A DNA stretch of 64,000 bases. Origin: Eutreptiella sp. 'Long Island Sound 2002' (taxonomy: Eukaryota > Protista > Euglenida). A program made the translations under genes and the position numbers. Below the pieces are notes generated by a model. That model was not told the origin of the DNA and made no database searches. It was given only the letters and a program-made list of their open reading frames with translations. Positions 29,068-42,755 of the stretch are shown here, one piece after another. The stretch lies in the NCBI GenBank assembly GCA_964036045.1, contig OZ038378.1, forward strand, positions 142,166,001-142,230,000, written 5' to 3'. The number at the start of each line of letters is the position of its first letter. Position 1 is the first letter of the stretch.

Positions 29068-30195
<1,128 letters not shown>

Positions 30196-30478
30196 CCTGT
30201 CACCCACATTGACCGATTTACCAGTCTTACAGCCCACACAAAGTGACAAACCACATTGTCTTATCATGGGAACCGCAAAAACCGTGGCTCCAAAAAGGCC
30301 CCCAAAAGTTTCGTCCCACAGGGTCGCCATGTTAGGACAAGGGCGTGCTACGCCAAGGAGGGGGGGGTAAGATGCTGGAAGGCAGGTGGGCTACCACGGG
30401 CTTATCGTGCACTTCGTGTACATAGGCCAGGCACGGCCAGCCCCCCCCACACCCGAGCGTCTGCCCCACATTGGGGCA

Positions 30479-30970
30479 TCAATCAACAATAGGAGATGTT
30501 CTCTGTCGCTTTGCTTTTCTTTCGACGTCAGAATAGCGAAGGCTTTGGTCCAACCAATCTGGCATTTTTGCTTCCGTGTTCCGCTCAAGAGCCTTCTTCA
30601 GATCCTCCCAAGAAAATTTTGTTTCGTCATCTTCTGCCTCGGGATCGATCGGCCGCCGGAGGTGGTCCTGCATCTCAGGGCAGACGGTGCAATCCCACAG
30701 CGTCCTGACCCTTTGTGCCCAATTCTCTGCCGCATGGCCCATGTGCATGAGCCGTGTGTGGCCTATATTCGGGAGCTGCAGGCCGTCGCGCTCCCGGAGC
30801 CGCTGACACCGTCTGCGGCATGCCCAGAGCACCTGCAAGGCCTCCTTGCCGCCCTCGGTCACCAGGCCATGCCCTTTCATCCACCGCAGGAGAATGTGGA
30901 AGTGGTCTTCCTCTTCGAGGTTCACAAAGGCAAACCGCCGCCGCAAAGCAGCGTCCAATTCAGTGCGGCC
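30479..30970 (-). CDS. AAA domain 2, terminal exon
   Basis: CAG|GGC acceptor. Contains ELDAALRRRFAFVNL, IGHTRLM and TLWDCTVCPEMQDHL. Stop TGA at 30481-30479. Confidence 0.85.
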   Translation of the reverse strand, partial: GRTELDAALRRRFAFVNLEEEDHFHILLRWMKGHGLVTEGGKEALQVLWACRRRCQRLRERDGLQLPNIGHTRLMHMGHAAENWAQRVRTLWDCTVCPEMQDHLRRPIDPEAEDDETKFSWEDLKKALERNTEAKMPDWLDQSLRYSDVERKAKRQRTSPIVD

Positions 30971-31507
30971 CTGCCAAGAGGCGGGGGTGGCAGAGGCAGT
31001 GGGTAGTGCGCGGCGAGTTGAGGCACGATGCCCACATGTGCCGGGGGGGGGGGGGGGTTCGTCTGGGTACAGTTTCGTGAGGGGAAAATTGCACATCTCC
31101 ATTTTTGGTGCAGGGCCATCAGACACGGGGAACTTCGACACCCCCAACCCTCAGTACCTTGTGGACGATCAGTTGTGTGAGACTGTGGCAGGCCCACAAT
31201 TTGAACAATACCCATCAGAGATAAAAGAAGAAGCCATTTGCAAAGAAGATGGACCAACTGCCGACAACAGCGCCACGATACCCGGCGACCGCCGCCACGG
31301 AGGATGCACAAGCAGCAGCAAGTGCCCCAAATTGCGCAATAAATTTCGCGGGGAAATTTTCGACACCAAAACTGAAAAACGAAATTGTCCCCTGTCCTCC
31401 AACCGCCTATCCAACCGCCTCTGGGACCGCCTTCGAGGTCCCTTCCCCCCTCATGCATCCCTGGTCTTGGTCCTGTGCGCTACACCACAACGGAGGCTGC
31501 GCAGCAC

Positions 31508-31723
31508 CTGCTGATTGATGATGAGGATAATGTGTAGCCCTTTATCAAGACTAAACTCGTGGGTGCGGCCTGGCAAATATATGGCCTGGTCCCGATACTC
31601 CATCAAAAAGAACAACTCGCCGAGGACGCTGGGGATCCGGCCCTGGTCCCGCTGCTCAACGTACAGCACCAACACGTGCTCCTTCCCCTTGTTCCGCGCG
31701 GAGAACTCCAGCAGAGGTCCATC
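31508..31723 (-). CDS. AAA domain 2, exon with degenerate Walker B and NxxD
   Basis: CAG|GAT acceptor. Encodes DGPLLEF...VLVLYVEQRDQGRIPSVLGELFFLMEYR...LHIILIINQQ. Donor CAG|GTGCTG. 72 codons. Confidence 0.85.
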
Positions 31724-33547
31724 CTGAAGACGAGAGGCACCGGCAGAGGAAGGGCGCGGCATGAGGCGCACTGTAGCGACCTCATTGCGTGGGCGGAAAT
31801 TGGCGTCCATGTGGGGGTAGTGGGGTGGTTCGAGCCCCCCTTCAGGGCTCCCATGACGGGAGGCTGTAAACGGCCCTGGAGGGTGGCAAAAAGCTCTGGA
31901 ACTAAAGGCTGGGTTTATATGCCGGTTGATACTTCCGGGTGTATGTAGTTGTTGATGTGGGGGAGTCATAAAGGCTGAGTTAATGTACCGGAATCCTCCA
32001 CGCATGGGTGTCTCAAAGGGGGGGGACGAAACAGTGGTGGTGCCTATGTCCCGCCATTTCCGGCGATCATCATGGCCGATCCACTACAGCACAGCCCCCT
32101 GAGTCATGAGCACACGCTTCAAACTACCAACAGCACACTGCCCATTCACCTAAACTGCTGATAACCCATCTACCCTTCGAATCCTGTCAGTTGCACGAGG
32201 GTTCTGTCACGAGAGGCCCTTTCCCAGACCACCCCACCCCTCCTCCTTCTGCCCCCCCCCCCCCCCCACCCCCGTTTGGGCTTGGGTGGTAGGGCCCTGA
32301 CGCGGTGCTTGCCCTGACAGACTGCCCGGTGCCGCGCGGCGACCCCCCTATGCCGCCACCTGGTCCCTGGCATTGGGCCCCTGCACAAACCAGACTGCGC
32401 TCACGGAATCCCTCGGACACCAACAGCAATCGGACCACTTTGTGCGGGGTGGGCGGGCTTTCAATTTTTGGGGCAGAGGGGCGGAGGTCGATACAACCCT
32501 CTGGCTAGACGCCCACCCCCCCCCCCCCAAAAGAAGGGCCCAATTGACGGGACCCCCAAAATCGTACCGAGACTGACCCCCGGGCCCTGGAGGTGACCCG
32601 GACATCGGGAAAAAATGAAAATGGGGTTTTTGGAATCAATGCTCAAAAAAATTGTCGGCACCTTCGGCTCCACAGTTCAGAATAACTGATTCATGGTCTT
32701 GTGAAACGAGCCCCTTTCCCGAACCCCCCGCCCTGATTTGGGGGGCTCTATTGAACCCCCCCCCCCCCCCCCTCGAAGGTGAAAACCCAACCTCCCACGT
32801 CGGCAGCAAAACATGGGGGGGGGGGCGGGGGGACCGCCGGGGGACGTCCAGGACACAGAGACATGCCCCTGATCCGAATGAGGGGGGTAACAAATGGCTG
32901 TGGGACCATTTGAGGCACTCGTGGCGTATGGGGCGTGTTGTGCCCCAAATGTCGACGGTGGACAGCACCGCCCCACGGTCCGCTCTCCTTTTGCCGTGGG
33001 AACGCAACCTGAGGCAAAGAGGTGATGCGGGCCCATGTGCTCCACCCTCCACGCGGCGGGTCAATGCACATTCCTGATGCCCCCCTCCATGGCTACGCAC
33101 GCGTACTTTCCATGGCTACGCACGCGTACTTTCCATGGCTACGCACCCTTACGCACGCGTACGCCCCAACACTCCGCACGCTTGTGTACGCTTGGGCTCG
33201 GGGACACGGAGGTGGGCATCTTGTATAGTCACGCACTGCTTCTGTGCGGAAATGCAATTGGTGCTGGTGGAATGTCTGTTGAAGGGCGTGTGCCCGATCA
33301 GTAGACCCCGATATCGGACGCGACCGGCACTTAAGGGGCTTTGCGGCGAAAACAAAATTCGCACGTGGGGACAGGGAGATGACGCCCGCTTACGCCCCAA
33401 CACCGCACACGCCTGCGCACGCTCAGCCCTGGTCTTTGCGCACGCTTGTGACCACAGGTCTGCCGCAGACCACCGCCGCAGCCCCAGTGAAGCGGGAGGG
33501 GACATGCAAAGTGCGGGCCACGAGATGCGGAGGGATGCGCCCGGGAC

Positions 33548-34189
33548 CTTCATCTCAAACGCACCGCTCGCCGTCGGGCGGTAGCCACACACAAACTCTT
33601 CGTAGCTGAGGTTTGCGTGCAGCCGCACGAACAGGAGCCGCTCGTCCGACGCCGCGCCGTCCGCCTCAGCAGACTCAGGGCGAGAGGGCATGGCCGCCTC
33701 TGGTCCCGGCGAAGGCCTCACAAAGCGGTTGAGATGGGGAGCGGCCTCGTCCTCCTTCGGGGGAGGCCTCTCCCCCCGGATGCCTTCGTCAGCCTCGTCC
33801 TGCGTGTCTGCCTCGTCGTTCGGGGCGCGTCCCTCGCTGCGGTCGGGGCCAAGGAGCAGCCGGGCCAAGTCCTGGGCGATGAACTTCTTGCCGCTGTTGG
33901 GGGGCCCGATGATGGCCAGTTGCTTCTTCCGTTTCAGTAGCCACAGGTCTTCCATAAAATTCCCTTGCGGCGCAGTGCGCGGTGCTGCCAGTCTGAGGTC
34001 ACTGTCGGTGGGGGTGTCAAAGGGCACCTTTTCTTTGGTCTGGCCGGCGTTGTCAAGGATGTCGACGTGACGACCTTCGAATTCGCCCTTCATTTGGCCC
34101 CAGAGAGTCTTGAACCGGAACTCCTTTGCCCGCTCCGCATCGCGGAAGAGGTCCTCGACATATGGCACGACTTGACTGTCCCACAGAAT
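33548..34189 (-). CDS. End of AAA domain 1 and start of degenerate McrB-like AAA domain 2
   Basis: T-rich tract then GAG|ATT acceptor. Contains ILWDSQVVPYVEDLF, then KKQLAIIGPPNSGKK and VRLHANLSYEEFVCGYRP. Donor AAG|GTCCCG. 214 codons. Confidence 0.88.
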
Positions 34190-34722
34190 CTCGAAAAAAA
34201 AACAAGGCAAACTTGGCGGCGTTGAGTCAGTGGCCGAGCTGTGGGGGGGTTTACGGTGACGCCACGGAGCACGGCACAGGCAACAAGCACCGGACCTTCG
34301 GTGTCACAAACACAAATGGCATCAAGCGAACGGTCATTATTTTGGAAAGTAGTGGTAATATGTAGCACTTGTAAACCCCCTGCTACGCATCTTAGAGATA
34401 GAACAACCTTTGACACAAAGGCCGTTCAGTTTGACAATTTGAAGCAATGACACGTGACAATTAGCCGATGCCGTATCCTGACTGCCTACATGACAGTGGT
34501 GTGCAATGTGCTGTGGCCTGCTGCGGCATGCTGTAGCATGTGGTGGGTGTAGTGTGGCATTTGCAGTGTTGTGAGACATGCCACACCAGCTGGCCGTTGC
34601 AAGGGTTCTGCATTAGCGTCCTGCTGGGACTTTGCCAAGAGCAACACAGAGTCGCCACGGGCCACCGCACCAACCTCCCAATCCTCCATTTCGCAGTGGC
34701 ATTGCACACGTCCCCGACGCAC

Positions 34723-35268
34723 CTGTAGCTCCGCCCAGCCCTCTTCGAAGCACTTCACCCCAAGCACGTGACTTGGGCCAATGTACCCCGCGGTGCCCTT
34801 CAACTTGTCGTTGGCCATCTCCAACAAGCGGTCAGCCACTTCCCCTAGCGACACCGCACGGGCCTTGAGCTCGTCCGGGAGCCGCAGGCTGTCCTGCCGA
34901 AACTTGCGCCGGACGACATGTCGCAGCGGCGAGTCCGGCAGCCGCGGATCCATCGCCACGAATGCAAAGCTCTGTCGTAGCTCCGCGCCGATGCGCACGA
35001 GGGACCGATCGAATGTGTTCATCGTGCCCAGAATCACCAGGTTTTCCGGAAGCTGACTGACGATGTCACCCGAATACTGCAGCTGCACGCGCAGCCGTCG
35101 AGGGTTCGAGGGACCTGGTTCTTGTGTGGCATGGCGGCGGTACAGGAGGTCCACAAGGTCACCCATGACCTTCGATAGAAGGCAGCGGTTGACTTCGTCG
35201 ATCACCAGCACCACCGTGCCCGACGCGTGACGCTTCGCTGCTTTCACGGCCTCCAGGAATGGCCCGTC
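34723..35268 (-). CDS. McrB-like AAA+ domain 1, exon with Walker B and NxxD
   Basis: AAG|GAC acceptor. Contains DGPFLEA, VLVIDEVNR, LPENLVILGTMNTFDRS, LRQSFAFV and YIGPSHVL. Donor CAG|GTGCGT. 182 codons. Confidence 0.88.
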
Positions 35269-36607
35269 CTTGACAGAGGGCAAGGGTTGGGGTTTTGAGG
35301 GGTTGATAAGGGTTGGAAAGGGAGAGGGACGGGAAAAAATGACCGCGGGGGGGGACCGGGCGGTCAACTGCTGAGACCGGGTCGATAGACCTGCCGAGAT
35401 GCCCCCCCCCCCCCAATACAAAAAATGGGGTGGGGGTTAATTGACGGGGCCCCCACAATCCAACTGGGACCAACCCCCAGGCCCCCGGAGGTGACCTGAA
35501 GCCAAAAGTCGGGCAAAAGGAAAATGGTACTTTTGGCATCAGCGCGTTGAGAGTTCCGAAGGGTCATCAGTTGTCTTGCACTTTGGATGCTAAAACAAGG
35601 GATCATTCTCAACACCCAAAAAGTGTTCTCGCCGCCTTCAGTGCTGGATTTCACAGTGACTGATCACCGGCCCCGTCATGTGCCCCCCCCCCCCCCCTAT
35701 CCGTCAGGTTTCGGAAGCTCTATTGACCCCCCACACCGAGCAGCTGTGTGCCCGACTTCCCGAGTGTGTGTTTGGCGGTGGAGTGGGGGTCGCAAGGAGG
35801 CTGAGGCCGGAATCAGATGGCAAAGGGTGGTGGACTAGAAAATGGGATTCTGTGGTGTGGACCGGGCCATAGTGTGGGAGAGGGCGCTTGGAGAAGTTTT
35901 GCAGTGCTCCCTGCCATCGCGCTGAGGGCGTTCTTGCAGCTGCAGACTCCAGCACATTGGGGTGGTGTAAAAACACTTTTTTGCAAACGATTGTTGGGCT
36001 GCCGCAGGGTAACTCTGATGGCTATTGTATTTGTGTCATCGTCGGCCCCTCCTTTCATTCGCGGCACATCTTGTAGTCCTTTGTGTGCATACAACCAGCA
36101 GTGGGGCAGAGACTTGCCCCATGTGCCCTGCTGTGCGGACATGGGGAGCCTGATGACCAGTGATGGCCATAAGACGGTTCGCCCCCCCCCCCCACCCTAT
36201 CCCGTCCATGGGTAGGTGTCTGTGGATGGGTCCATGGGTCTGCAGGTCCGGCATCAATGCAATACTCCGTTGCACGCCCTGTGATGGTGGGGGGGACCAC
36301 TATCAGGCCATTTTCCAGGCATGGGGCTGTAAAAAAGGGAACAACAGGAAGTACACAACTTTACTGAAAAAACAGAGAACCGCAGGAACTACTCAACAAC
36401 AGTGACAAGTCCTCATCCACAGCATCCATGTGCAGCTTTGGCAAACAGTTTTGTCTGGTAAAGGACCAATATTTTGTAGTGACGGCACAGAAAAATGCTC
36501 CAGCGGGAGTGGGGCAGCGTGCATGTACGTGGAGTGAAGACGTGTCCTAGGGCAGAATTGGGTACACTGAAGGGCGGGCGTAGGGCAGGAAGTGGAGGAG
36601 ATAATGT

Positions 36608-36621
36608 GGGTGTGTGTGTGT

Positions 36622-36685
<64 letters not shown>
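36608..36685. repeat. (TG)n microsatellite, left flank of the pogo-like insertion; continues at 38697-38770
   Basis: Directly visible on both sides of the element. Confidence 0.9.
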
Positions 36686-36686
<1 letters not shown>

Positions 36687-36687
<1 letters not shown>

Positions 36688-38694
36688 CCTCCCCCCCCCG
36701 TGCCCAAGAACCAGCAATGTTTGACCGCGGAACCAGGGGTTGGTTCTTGCGCACACTTTTCCCCCTAAATTTGACCGCGGAACCAGGGGTTGGTTCTTGC
36801 GCACAGCCGTGGGCAACCCCGTACCGCGGAAAAAAAAAAATTTCCGGCGCGTTGCGCCGGGACATGCGTGCCCTCTCCTTTCCCACAGTTAACCACGTTG
36901 ACAAATGAACACCAAAGGAGTGAATCGCAGCTGACTGGGCTGTAGTGTGCCTTCCAACGTGCATGGGATGATCTACTGTTCAACTGGCTGAGACGTGAAA
37001 CCCTTCTTCCTGTGATACACCATCCTGAATTCCTGTCTGTGCTGCCCCTTGGGGCCAGGCTTCGGTGCTACACTCGCCTTTGGAGCTGGCTTCGGCTTAG
37101 GCTTAGGCTTGGGGTCTGGGACATTAAAATGCATGGGGACTGCATCATCATCCATGATGTCCCTTGTGAAAAACAGCTTGTTGTTGAACACATGTGCCAA
37201 GCCCCAGACACCCCTGGCTGCCTTTGCCCAGATGATATCCTCTTGTTGCACGCGACCATTGGGTTTACCCTTCCACACAATGGTGGGTCTTCCACGCAAA
37301 ATATCAGTGAGGGCCAGTGCGGGATCACCGTCGGCATCGGTGGTGTGCTCCACACGGACCATGAAATGAAGATACACGGTCCGATCCACTGATATCGGCG
37401 ATCTCTAAGGCTACGGTGGATGTTGGCCCTGCAAATGGCTGCACGCGGGACGAAAATGGACACATACGGACCTGTAGTGCTTTAGTAAAGGTGCCAGCAA
37501 TTCGTCATCCACGCGGCGGTATGACGATACTTTCTTCATCGTCAGTCTCCTCCGGCGCCGAAATCCAGACCACCAATTGGCCAAACGATCACCCTTGAGC
37601 TGTGCTATTTCTGTACTCATCTTGTACGCCTTTGCTAGCACCATTCGTTTCGTCACGCAAATGCGTCGTGCACGTCGCTTGACAATCCACGCTCGGAGCT
37701 CCCCCTCCACCTCATGAAACCGTGATTGCTTGCCGGGGTGAAGAGTCTTTGCCGTGCCCTTTTTTTTCGCCAATTTTTCCAACGCCTTGCGCTTGTCGTC
37801 CCACTTACACACCGAACCGTGGCTCCCCACTTTGTAGATGCGTGCTGCCTCGCGTGGCCCGTGCTTGTCAGAGTACGCCAAACAACGCAATTTGCGACGT
37901 ACATCGTAATGCACACGCTTTGGCGCCCTGTCGCTTTCAGCTCGTGACCGCTTGCGCTTGCGAACTGCCGGCTCCGCGCGGACAACGATTGTGGGTGCAG
38001 TGTCCTGTGCAGAACTGCTACTGGTGGGGAGTGAAGCATTAGGCCCAAAAAAGTTGGTGATCTCCGTTTGCTTCTGGACAGGCGCCGCAGAAAAGAAATT
38101 GGTAATCTCTGGTTGAATCTGGACAGGTCGCACACTGGGGGGCGCAGAATGCCGTGGGCGTCGTTTGGCAGATCGTTCCATTGGTCGTGTCCTTGGGGGT
38201 GGGGATGGGGACCGACTTGGTGCACTGTCCCATTCCGGAGAATCGGGGATCGTGGGAATGGGACGCGAGAGGTTGGCAATTAAAGCAGCTGGGTGCCTCA
38301 CCAGACGCTCATTGCGTTTGTACTCAATCTGCACTGTCTCAGACTGGGCACCAGGACCCAACACAGTGGCTGGAACAAGAGAGCCATCAGATCGCCGATA
38401 GAAGACAGACTCACCGGCAGTGTACATGGGAACGTCTGTGGTACAGAACAAGGAATGGAAGAGGTGGTGCAAAAGCAAACATGAGCCTGTGAGTGACTGA
38501 TAGGGTCCCCCCTGATGGGGGGACCCATAGTAACACACATGAAATGATGTCCTGCACACCTGAATAGCTGTCCTACATCCACCAGAAACATGAAAAACCC
38601 ACTACCCTGGTAAAAAAAGTGATGTGAGAATTTGACCGCGGAACCAGGGGTTGGTTCTTGCGCAAGGTGGTTCTTGGGCACGGGGGGGGGAGGG
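36687..38694 (-). mobile_element. pogo/Tigger-like (Tc1/mariner superfamily) DNA transposon, internally truncated
   Basis: 27-bp perfect TIRs (CCCTCCCCCCCCCGTGCCCAAGAACCA), TA on both sides (36685-86 and 38695-96), and a 33-bp subterminal motif repeated three times. ORF has CENP-B-type HTHs (EVEGELRAWIVKRR...W..GFRRR) and a partial DDE region (DRTVY...RPTIVWKGK). Confidence 0.88.
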
Positions 38695-38734
38695 TATGTG
38701 CGTGTGTTTGTGTGTGCGTGTGTGTGTGCGTGTG

Positions 38735-38771
<37 letters not shown>

Positions 38772-38971
38772 CAAAGGTGCTGTTACCAGAAGGCAATGGC
38801 CGGGATTGCTTACGGGCATAGCAAAACGGGAGGGCTGTGTGTGTTGCGTGCTTACTGTGCGTTGTGTGTGTCCGCTGGTCCTCGCTGCCCTGCCATTTTG
38901 TGGCGGTTGTGTGTGTGGGGGGGGGGGGTATTGCCATTTTTACCAGGTCTCCTGGATTAGCCCGTATGGCC

Positions 38972-39013
<42 letters not shown>

Positions 39014-39018
39014 CGTGG

Positions 39019-39049
<31 letters not shown>

Positions 39050-39051
<2 letters not shown>

Positions 39052-39515
39052 GTGTTGCCATTTTTACCAGTATGGCCACTCTGGCGTCCTCGGGTCGGGT
39101 CACTCCCATCGAAGCAGGCCCACTGTACGGGCTCAGGGTGCGTCCCTGTGTTACCCCTCGACCAGTGTGATATGCACTCTGGACCAGAACCTGGCTCGCT
39201 GCCCCAGGACCACCCTGGAAGTGAGGGTGGTAGCTCCGTGGCTTCCGCCGGGCCAGCTCCACGGTAATAGTTCAACGAGCCCGTCATGGCCATGTTGCCC
39301 CGTGTGTTGTGTGTGTGATGGGGCAATCACAGCTGGTGGTGCTTGCGGCAGCGAGGCGGCGTCCATGCCTACTCATTCAGCGATTTTCTCAGAAAGGGTG
39401 CCCTTGACGCACGGCTTCCGCCGCCCGCCCCCAGGCACGCCCACTCCGGGAATCGAACCCACGATCTCTCGGGTGCGAGTCCTACGCTTAGCCTGGTTGA
39501 GTTAGCCGGGGATCC
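39050..39515 (-). mobile_element. tRNA-derived SINE-like element
   Basis: 5-prime head has an A-box-like TAACTCAACCAGG and a B-box GGTTCGATTCC, but no intact acceptor stem. Bounded by (CA)n/(TG)n tracts. The 3-prime boundary is approximate. Confidence 0.55.
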
Positions 39516-39549
<34 letters not shown>

Positions 39550-42396
39550 TGCCAATTGCCAATTGCCCCACCACGGGGGTGATTTCATCGCCTTCAGTTC
39601 TCGCCTGTGGCAGTTCTTTGATGTCCATTGATTGTCCTTATCCACGTGTGTGTGTGTGTGCGTGTGTGTGTGCATGTTTGCACTTGCGTCTGCCTCTTGC
39701 AATAATTGCCTTGCCCGGCACCCCAGGCGCAGGGTTGCAGGCCTACTACTACACACCCCGCTGCCGTGCTTCCCTGTGATGCCTCACAGGTGCCGCTTGC
39801 TGCATGTGTACCAGCGCAGCAGAACAGGGAGAGCGACCTGTACACAGCACTGAGAGAACAGTCCGTCGCGGCCAGTCACCCAATGACCGGGGCACAAAGT
39901 GGGGCACGACAGGGGCTTCCAGCACAGGACGAAATCCCTCAAAGCCAAAACCATATGGACGGACCAGTGTGTGCCCCCTGCCCACCATCCAGTGCCGTAC
40001 TGCAAGTAGCCGCCTCTCTGGTCTAGGAGAGGGGAAGGGAGGGCGGCTTACCCCGAGGCAGGCGTCCAAAGAGGGGTCAAGGATGTCGTCCGGGAGACAT
40101 CATCAGTACACAGTCGCAGGTGAAAATCTTTCTTTCGCCGTTCGAAACATTTCCGGGCGCCATGACGGAGATTGTCCAGCACAGAATTCTGAAAATAAAA
40201 AAAAGGGGGAGGTTGTTTACCCTTTGCGGCGGAAAATGTTTTTGGTTGTGTGGGTCATTGTTGGTGACCTCAAACGTGCGAACATGAGTGTCTCCGCATT
40301 TGATAGTCATGCCCACACAAATTCTTGTCCCTCCATCATGGGGCCACCTTGGTGGAAATCTCGGCCATCTCGGTAGGAATTGGAGTCATCATGTACAGCC
40401 ATGTGGCAAAAACAACATGCTTCAAATGGCGTAAACACCCAGCTACCGAAAAAAGGGGAGGGGCTATGCGTAACCCTCATGACGTGCCTCCCGTAAAAGT
40501 CGCCCCCCCCCCCCCCCTTCTTGGGCCAGGCGGCCAAATAGTTGTTGCACTGCAAGCGCGCTGCGCGAAGGGCACCCCCAAATAGAAACAAATGCAGAAA
40601 AATTGCTAAATGAGGCAATGCATTCCGCAGTCTGAGTTGAGTGCACGGGGCGCAGCGCTACACAAGGGGGAGGGAAGGGAACCACGGGGAAAGGGAGGAG
40701 GGGTACCAAGTGGCCAGGCCGCCGAACGAGCAATCTGGAACGCCACATCGGCAAAACCCCCTTCCCCACGAGGGAACACCGCTGACACGCCACCGGTAGC
40801 GGCGCCCCGAACCAGAGAGAGAGCGCCTCTCACATGGGTGGAGAAAGGGCCCTGACCAGCGCTCCACAGGGGACGGCACCAGGGGACGCAGAGGGGGCCA
40901 CTCCGGCAGGGGGCTTGGACCCGCCAGTGGACTGGCTGGCCCCAAGAAGAGCAGCCCGGGAAAACCAGAAGAAGAGCACGAGAAGAAGGGGAGAGGGGCA
41001 GCAGAGTGGACCGCGGGGCCAAACCAGAACAACCCCCCCCCCCCCCCCGCGTACGAGGCAAAATCTTTCCACTGTCCGGGGGCACTGCACGGGTTGGTGG
41101 TTTGTTTGGGTAACGAACCACAACCCCTCAGCCCCTGGACTTTGACATCAAAGATAACATGCACTGGACGCAGTCGCAAACACAAAAACCAGTTGGGCAT
41201 CAAAAGACTTTGTATCCAACCCAACCCAACACCCAACCACCCGCCTGTGTGACATTTCGTTTCTCGCTGGTTTCCTTACAGGGCCCTGGGCAGCCACCCG
41301 TCCTTCCCTTCGAAGAGTGCGTTGCGTCCTTCTTGCATCTTATCCGTGTGAGTGGGGTCTCCGGCCTCCCCTGCGTCGAGCCACATGAGCCAACAGTGTT
41401 TGTCGGGGCAATTGCTTCGCGACGCAGCGGGTGGTGGCTGTTTGGCTGTGACATACTACGCCATGGGCCATAAAGGAGGTGGATAGCCCCTTCTCCCCCG
41501 AGTGTTGGGCTTCAGAACTAAGCTGAACCGCCCGGCCAATGCTTTCACAACCCGACAACAACAACTCTTGGCTGGCCACAAGTCCTGGCTCACGGTTCAC
41601 AGTATGAACCAGCCTGCATGCAGCCCCGGGTGTGCAGAGTGGTGAGGCACACTATCCTGCTCCTTTCCGGCAGTGAGTCCTACTGTCGGCCCTCAAATCT
41701 AAATGCAAATATTTGCCTGCACACAACCCCTCCGCCCTCACGTGCCGCGGTTCAGTCCGCAGTACGCCAAGTAGACCCCCAAACTGGCTCCCATGCTCCC
41801 AGCCGCCCCCCCCGCCCTCCCCACACACACAGACAAAGCCACACTCACCAACCCACCAACACACACTCACTCACTCACTCAATCACTAACATGACAAGGA
41901 CAATAACCCGAAGACAACATCCGGCGTCCTCCGATTAGCACCCGGGGGCATACCACATTCAGCCCACAGACAAGCCGTGCCACCAGAATCCGGTCTCGGG
42001 GTCGCTATTGACCCCCTGGAGCCCCCACTATTGGCGCGCCCAGATGACAGAGGAATGCATGGGTGATAGAGCGATGGAACGGGCCAATATTTGGAGGGCG
42101 GGGGCTGACGGGTGGTTGCACGTCAGCCCATCAGCTCTCTGTAACAACATGGCGGGCAGTCCTGGAAAGGGCGTCGGAGGGGCTGCCATAAAGACTGAGT
42201 GAATATGCCGGTTGGTACTGCCGAATGTATGTAGTTGTTCACTGTTTTGAGAGGGGAAGGGAAGCATTCACGTGTGGATGGGTGGGTGGCGTGGGTGGTG
42301 GGGATATTTGGATGGGTGGGCGTCGGGCAGGTGGTGGGGACTATATTGGAGAGGCGCTGGATTCTCGTGAACAGATGGAGAAGTAGAAAGCAATGC

Positions 42397-42755
42397 CTGC
42401 AGCTTGTAAGAAGCGCCGCCGCCGCCGCCGCCTCCACCGCTACTGAGGTCACTGTCCGAGACATTCGCGCCATTAGGGGCCACCGGGCGGTATCCACAAA
42501 CGAAGTCTTCGTAGCTGTACGCCGGATGGAACTGCACAAGGAACACACGGCCGCGGGCGCCCGCCAAGTGCCGCGCGTACTGCTGCACGGTCCATGACTT
42601 GCCGGTGCCCGGGGGGCCACAAAAGATAACGTTGCGCATGCTCTTCAACAAGAGGCTCCACTGCTCGAGTACGTTGGCATCTACCAGCGTCGCGCTATGC
42701 ACCCTCGAGATCTCCGGAGCGATTGCGTGTTGGGGTCCAAATATGAAATCCAGGC
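42397..42755 (-). CDS. McrB-like AAA+ domain 1, N-terminal exon (Walker A)
   Basis: RNVIFCGPPGTGKS and VQFHPAYSYEDFVCGYRP are McrB signatures. Phase-1 acceptor TCGTCAG|GC at 42756; an alternative phase-0 acceptor exists at 42856. Donor CAG|GCATTG (GC) is inferred from alignment with domain 2. Confidence 0.8.

Follow-up and report, generated by a model that had tools for sequence, protein, structure and literature searches.

The stretch analysed here, 64,000 nucleotides from the euglenid Eutreptiella sp. 'Long Island Sound 2002' (hereafter the window; C1:142166001-142230000 in a searched genome of 2.28 Gb and 2317 contigs), contains on its minus strand, from 42755 to 30479, what is most likely the 3' portion of a single eukaryotic gene interrupted by introns, predicted from its sequence to encode two McrB-family AAA+ modules per chain. 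These modules are called domain 1 (D1) and domain 2 (D2). No long bacterial-style open reading frame spans 30479-42755, and the motifs do not lie within one open frame. All homology searches were run exon by exon, and motifs were located by a six-frame search. Stop-free segments together with splice signals give a model of five exons, whose ends at 42755 and 30479 match those of a preliminary description of this DNA. Every acceptor has AG, and the donors are GT but for a GC after exon A. The preliminary description had also named eight motifs in the two domains, and the six-frame search recovered all of them on the minus strand, each where it had been placed. The predicted exons and their features, compared with McrB of T. 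gammatolerans (TgMcrB) and of E. coli (EcMcrB), are as follows.

42755-42397, minus strand: exon A, the N-terminal half of D1 from helix alpha0 via Walker A to '...YKLQ' (in-frame part 42753-42397, 119 amino acids, aa)
42618-42595, minus strand: D1 Walker A, GPPGTGKS, intact (motif search and EcMcrB alignment)
35269-42396, minus strand: 7.1 kb intron inside D1, phase 0, directly before 'DGPF'
35268-34723, minus strand: exon B, 182 aa, with D1 Walker B, the helix-2 and pre-sensor inserts, the MNTFDRS loop, LRQSF and most of the lid
35205-35185, minus strand: D1 Walker B, VIDEVNR, with the Asp, the Glu and the next Asn intact (motif search and McrB structure alignment)
35022-35008, minus strand: D1 consensus loop MNTFD(RS), intact, lying under MNTADRS of TgMcrB and EcMcrB
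34980-34966, minus strand: D1 LRQSF, lying under LRRRF of TgMcrB and EcMcrB, the R425 equivalent changed to Q and the R426 equivalent to S
34189-33548, minus strand: exon C, 214 aa, with the last D1 lid helix, a linker of ~65 aa and the N-terminal half of D2
33907-33884, minus strand: D2 Walker A, GPPNSGKK, degraded (second Gly to Asn, Mg-binding Ser/Thr to Lys, Lys kept)
33844-33650, minus strand: acidic, proline-rich D2 insert of ~65 aa, in the gap between the EcMcrB-aligned blocks, from the post-P-loop helix to strand beta2
31723-31508, minus strand: exon D, 72 aa, D2 from 'DGPL' via Walker B to the sensor-1 strand
31666-31652, minus strand: D2 Walker B, LYVEQ, degraded, with 'EQ' under the 'DE' of D1 in a BLASTP alignment
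31519-31508, minus strand: D2 INQQ, with the Asn kept and the Asp of NxxD lost (NQQG after splicing)
30970-30482, minus strand: exon E, 163 aa, with the D2 finger helix, lid and C-terminal tail (stop codon 30481-30479)
30949-30932, minus strand: D2 ALRRRF, an intact sensor-II/arginine-finger motif, exact as ALRRRFAF

By its sequence, D1 is a clear McrB AAA+ module save for the missing trans arginines. Exon B aligns with TgMcrB (6ut3) at E 6.6e-15 and with EcMcrB (6hz4) at E 1.9e-11, and exon A aligns with EcMcrB (6ut6) at E 7.7e-12. The Pfam family AAA_5 extends across D1, with positions 1-60 in exon A (E 6e-9) and 55-138 in exon B. In TgMcrB, Niu et al. 2020 assigned Arg425 as a trans-acting substitute for sensor II and Arg426 as the arginine finger, both acting on the GTP of the neighbouring subunit (PMC7680126), which bears out the premise of the preliminary description that the LRRRF arginines of McrB work in trans. 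Within LRRRF, Arg425 is the second R and Arg426 the third, and exactly these two are substituted in D1.

D2 exhibits the opposite motif pattern and is, by its alignments, a diverged, degenerate McrB module homologous to D1. Exon C matches EcMcrB weakly (E 3.4e-5) in two blocks, EcMcrB residues 28-60 and 62-90, which correspond to the P-loop region and to the strand 'FV.LH...SYEEF..GYRP'. BLASTP aligns D2 to D1 at E 8e-8 and 7e-5, and 'FVCGYRP' is common to both domains. Pfam gave no match for the stop-free frames in which exons C, D and E lie, or for the trimmed exons D and E. Across the predicted junction of exons D and E, NQQG-RT falls under NTFD-RS of D1, and the spacer from there to LRRRF is 2 residues shorter. 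ALRRRFAF is retained though four cis motifs are gone. The acidic insertion that the preliminary description put at ~70 aa after the D2 Walker A is present, with ~65 aa between the EcMcrB-aligned blocks.

Searches with the D2 exons returned only the same species for exon C (P0154, from another assembly) and no match for exon E. The second assembly is identical over 345 aa save for an extra 18 bp, 'QRINEW', at 33946/33947, before the D2 P-loop helix. With the added residues an aromatic again stands 14 positions before the P-loop, as Trp or Phe does in D1, in its orthologues and in the prokaryotic protein P0005 (see below); this is probably the base-stacking position.

How unusual is the loss of the arginine pair in D1? 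A HMMER search of 1.84 billion representatives with exon B gave 13,177 McrB-like proteins, and the pattern NxxD[RKQYH][ST] was counted in 270 retrieved proteins. It occurs there 284 times, and 275 of these matches have the arginine pair (274 RRR and 1 HRR). Five of the remaining nine are chance matches out of context, and the other four are genuine McrB domains lacking the pair, namely the D1 described here and the environmental proteins P0002, P0155 and P0156. Over exon B these three are 53-54% identical to D1, of which they are orthologues. GPPGTGKS, IDEINR and MNVSDRS are all present in them, and LRKGF takes the place of LRRRF. All three are eukaryote-like genomic fragments that end in '...LQ|V', just after D1 and at the position of the intron between exons B and C. 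The intron after '...LQ' is thus common to them and to D1, and the 'DGP' intron of D1 is absent from them. Joining exons A and B across the GC-AG intron yields '...YKLQ|DGPF...', colinear with these orthologues that have no intron at that point. In the D1 clade, constraint thus acts on the cis half of the site and leaves the trans arginines able to change, to Q-S in the gene described here and to K-G in its orthologues, as the model of the preliminary description would predict for D1. Because the orthologues keep the cis motifs without the arginine pair, and the pair is invariant in the other McrB domains sampled, selection rather than decay, which the preliminary description had argued for both domains from the reciprocal pattern, is supported for D1; the comparative basis is this half of the pattern.

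A scan of Joint Genome Institute (JGI) metagenomes with the D1 orthologue alignment returned bacterial McrBs alone, at no more than 39% identity, and paralogues of exons B, C and E were not found in the same genome. An isolated McrB-like fragment of 44 aa, '...HPSLSYEEFVGGYQP...', does lie at C14:6055225-6055356 (L106, L109). It is 50% identical to D2 and has two TGA stops. A tblastn search of the 30 kb around it (C14:6040000-6069999) revealed no further McrB exons, and the fragment is probably a relic.

Below the orthologues, the top of the exon B search includes a set of metagenomic prokaryotic proteins with two McrB modules in tandem (such as P0003, P0004, P0005, P0007, P0014, P0016, P0017, P0037, P0082, P0128 and P0129). 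A motif scan found both sites fully intact in all of them. A tree of N-terminal halves indicates at least four independent duplications. In some tandem families, D1 and D2 of one protein are mutual closest relatives. No description of tandem McrBs was found in the literature searched, which included the 2024 McrBC census. The prokaryotic proteins resemble the euglenid gene in having two McrB modules per chain with similar spacing between them. They differ in that their sites are all intact and their duplications are separate, and the euglenid D1 groups with single-domain McrBs. Scans of GTDB genomes gave nothing with a single-protein query, and with an alignment query they gave 80 loci that included no tandem McrB. 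One candidate for a reciprocal tandem, in a Poseidoniaceae archaeon (metagenome-assembled genome; L090:1019-3616), was rejected; it is a single McrB with ~330 residues between Walker B (DELNR) and MNTTDRS, an AAA+ core insertion of unusual size.

An origin of the euglenid gene from a bacterial tandem was considered and rejected. A tree of N-terminal halves, weak at 92 columns, sets D1 and its orthologues among single-domain McrBs and leaves D2 unplaced. A tree in which D1, D2 and the orthologues were held together has a log-likelihood 6.1 above that of the free search and is not rejected by the approximately unbiased (AU) test (p-AU 0.62). The introns before 'DGP', which end at 35269 in D1 and 31724 in D2, interrupt the two domains at an equal codon boundary and in equal phase. 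A duplication within the eukaryotic lineage is compatible with these data, though not proven by them, because the 'DGP' introns share position and phase, 'FVCGYRP' is common to both domains and the constrained tree is not rejected.

To consider how two modules on one chain might be arranged, AlphaFold2 models of two prokaryotic tandems that arose by independent duplications, P0005 (pLDDT, the predicted local distance difference test, 71; pTM, the predicted template modelling score, 0.68; N-terminal 145 residues disordered) and P0129 (pLDDT 70, pTM 0.59), were compared with known structures. In rigid-body structural alignments, residues 137-695 of P0005 fit dynein-1 2173-2810 over 446 residues at 5.1 A (Z 18.6), and residues 247-868 of P0129 fit dynein 2196-2862 over 492 residues at 5.3 A (Z 17.2). 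In the dynein domain map these segments correspond to AAA2 plus AAA3. P0129 also fits the Mdn1 ring over 496 residues at 6.0 A. Fits to one AAA+ module stop at ~220-280 residues, so the long ones span both domains, in the same N-to-C order. Stacked two-tier AAA+ proteins were absent from the two-domain fits of the two models among the top 1000 chains from Foldseek. From the lid of D1 to the P-loop of D2 the euglenid chain has ~80 aa, and the modelled tandems have ~64-76 aa. Dynein completes each site with an arginine finger from the C-terminal neighbour, so that module n+1 serves the site of module n (PMC4879348). By analogy with these models, D2 may sit where the finger donor for the D1 pocket would be, which favours, through the placement of modelled tandems on dynein and Mdn1 neighbours, the proposal of the preliminary description that D2 supplies arginines to D1.

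A candidate partner is also present. The sole match to Pfam McrBC (PF10117) found in the genome, in an exon-wise search from which only the best candidates were taken, is at C1:142278669-142283834 (E 1.9e-13), within C1:142277889-142283834 (L010, L011). This McrC homologue is on the same strand as the tandem McrB, ~50 kb upstream (48-54 kb beyond the end of the window). It is split by an intron of ~4.4 kb and has an intact PD...DVK nuclease motif (PD...DxK). McrC stimulates McrB via the NxxD aspartate (PMC7680126, PMC11090510), which D1 keeps and D2 is without. McrC further requires the pore of the hexamer (PMC6624300).

The surroundings of the gene include other elements. Within the D1 intron, a 396-aa open frame at 37414-38601 on the minus strand has a weak match, under the Pfam cut-off, to a Tc5/pogo-type helix-turn-helix (E 0.016). 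With the CA/TG microsatellites on its flanks it is probably a transposon remnant. A (CA)n/(TG)n microsatellite begins ~150 bp past the stop codon and is very long, at ~0.8 kb (29400-30330). In the region upstream of the gene, two simple regular-expression scans, for canonical leucine-rich repeats and for 84-nucleotide exons bounded by AG and GT, gave no convincing match.

On balance we lean towards a composite site formed in the plane of a ring, in which the cis elements of D1 are complemented by the Arg-Arg pair of D2, a reading that draws on analogy. D1 and D2 would lie side by side in the ring plane in the manner of dynein and midasin, with D2 on the finger-donor side of D1. Each chain would then hold one complete GTPase site, built from the Walker A, Walker B and NxxD of D1 and from the arginines that D2 provides in trans. 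Between chains, the degraded pocket of D2 would meet a D1 helix from the next chain that has no arginine pair, and this interface would be catalytically dead. Three such chains might form a closed pseudo-hexamer in which three live and three dead sites alternate, and McrC, presumably the product of the single homologue found in the genome, would act at the live D1 sites only. We infer the in-plane geometry from the models of prokaryotic tandems; the trimer, the use of GTP and the cooperation with McrC are likewise inferred.

Several points weigh against this composite-site reading. The P-loop lysine is kept in D2, so nucleotide binding there may still be possible. Beside the D2 P-loop, the 18-bp in-frame indel distinguishes one assembly of the species from the other. 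D2 is known from one species, so that the comparative support covers the D1 half of the reciprocal pattern only. Support for the geometry is drawn from AlphaFold models, the modelled relatives being only ~33-41% identical to D1 exon B, and these models were built from shallow alignments (15 rows) that may favour dynein-like packing. Splicing and expression of the gene are predictions, and one donor is GC.

The same motif evidence would also serve a self-contained GTPase switch that does not depend on a closed ring, and whose assembly, if any, would be set by something else, for example a putative upstream sensor part or McrC, in the style of NLR/STAND proteins. Mutants of McrB in Walker B and in Arg425/Arg426 lose the hexamer (PMC7680126), and here every second interface is without both pocket and arginines. 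Because the nucleotide sites of McrB seem to hold the ring together, and the interfaces between chains here have no working site, ring assembly in this protein may be controlled in another way. However, the prokaryotic tandems keep both sites intact and so probably close rings, and the need of McrC for a hexamer pore also argues against such a switch, which we regard as unlikely though worth keeping in view. Decidedly speculative, and in our opinion improbable, is a scheme in which a eukaryote recast the McrBC motor as an immune-type machine, whose ring would have three tandem chains, each with a GTPase site of its own, and three nucleotide-blind interfaces between chains. A putative upstream sensor array would gate ring assembly, and with it the licensing of the nuclease by McrC, by ligand rather than by GTP. 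Such a protein would be a natural half-site AAA+ ring whose 'engine' and 'assembly' interfaces are distinct.

It is also conceivable that the gene is a decaying or non-enzymatic relic, which drifted after bacterial transfer and duplication and whose complementary pattern is coincidental. The heavy degradation of D2 with its low-complexity insert, the transposon-bearing 7 kb intron within D1, the indel polymorphism beside the D2 P-loop and the broken McrB-like fragment elsewhere in the genome would all fit such decay. However, the five exons are all open, their splice sites are usable and the junctions restore colinearity with homologues. The cis motifs of D1 are identical to those of the family consensus, and orthologues at 53-54% identity have them too, the arginine pair alone varying, while D2 has an exact ALRRRFAF and the indel is in frame. 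We give this explanation little credence. Least probable of the readings considered is a stack of two rings of type II, as in p97, NSF and ClpB, with homomeric tiers, no complete site and nucleotide that is bound but barely hydrolysed. Tandem AAA+ proteins of the classic clade do stack, often with one tier inactive (CDC48-like proteins, PMC11090510), and the linker of ~65 aa is long enough. In such a stack, however, the RRRF of D2 and the full catalytic set of D1 would be pointless because all sites would be broken, and the models of P0005 and P0129 fit dynein and Mdn1 neighbours over both domains, with in-plane two-domain matches and none stacked among the top 1000 Foldseek chains. We consider stacking very unlikely.

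Compared with McrB of the McrBC type IV restriction systems (E. coli and T. gammatolerans; 6hz4, 6ut3-6ut7), D1 aligns over the whole AAA+ core and shares Walker A, DExNR, MNxxDRS and the lid region 'G(P/H)S(H/Y)', D2 aligns weakly, and the same chromosome arm carries an McrC homologue. The euglenid protein differs in having two modules per chain, a D1 without the trans Arg-Arg and a D2 without functional Walker A, Walker B and NxxD. Its gene is eukaryotic and intron-split, and does not share an operon with McrC, which is encoded at a distance of ~50 kb. The dynein heavy chain and midasin (Rea1/Mdn1) likewise concatenate modules of AAA_5-type fold, and modelled tandem McrBs superpose on neighbouring modules of their rings; dynein mixes live and dead sites within one ring (PMC4879348). 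Unlike the protein proposed here, they have six modules per chain, use ATP, have no nuclease partner and do not strictly alternate their dead sites. Pex1/Pex6 resembles the proposed ring as a trimer of dimers (PMC4490564). Engineered linked Msp1 dimers with one inactive E-to-Q subunit each still form pseudohexamers with ATPase activity (PMC12793716). Both belong to another AAA+ clade, are separate chains or artificial fusions, and are not defined by a split between cis and trans halves. Neuron navigators are animal proteins with an McrB-family AAA+ domain thought to have been transferred from bacteria (PMC9877351). From their description they are alike in placing an McrB-family AAA+ domain in a eukaryote and unlike in that they have one such domain with a cytoskeletal role and lack an McrC partner. 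Combinations of live and dead sites in one ring are already known, as are eukaryotic domains of the McrB family. What appears to be new, as read from the predicted protein, is the division of an McrB site into a cis half and a trans half that lie on two fused modules.

To our knowledge, McrB is the sole AAA+ motor run on GTP. The number and order in which its six sites fire are still debated from asymmetric states seen by cryo-electron microscopy. If the composite-site reading is true, the euglenid protein would be a natural McrB with every second site switched off through the division of cis and trans halves between its domains, and would allow a ready test of whether the sites fire in sequence or probabilistically. 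With the NxxD aspartate in D1 only, it would likewise probe how McrC chooses its site. The analysis further brings to light prokaryotic tandem McrBs, of which we found no account in the literature searched. It adds mechanistic detail for an apparent eukaryotic McrBC locus and bears on the reuse of bacterial defence genes by eukaryotes.

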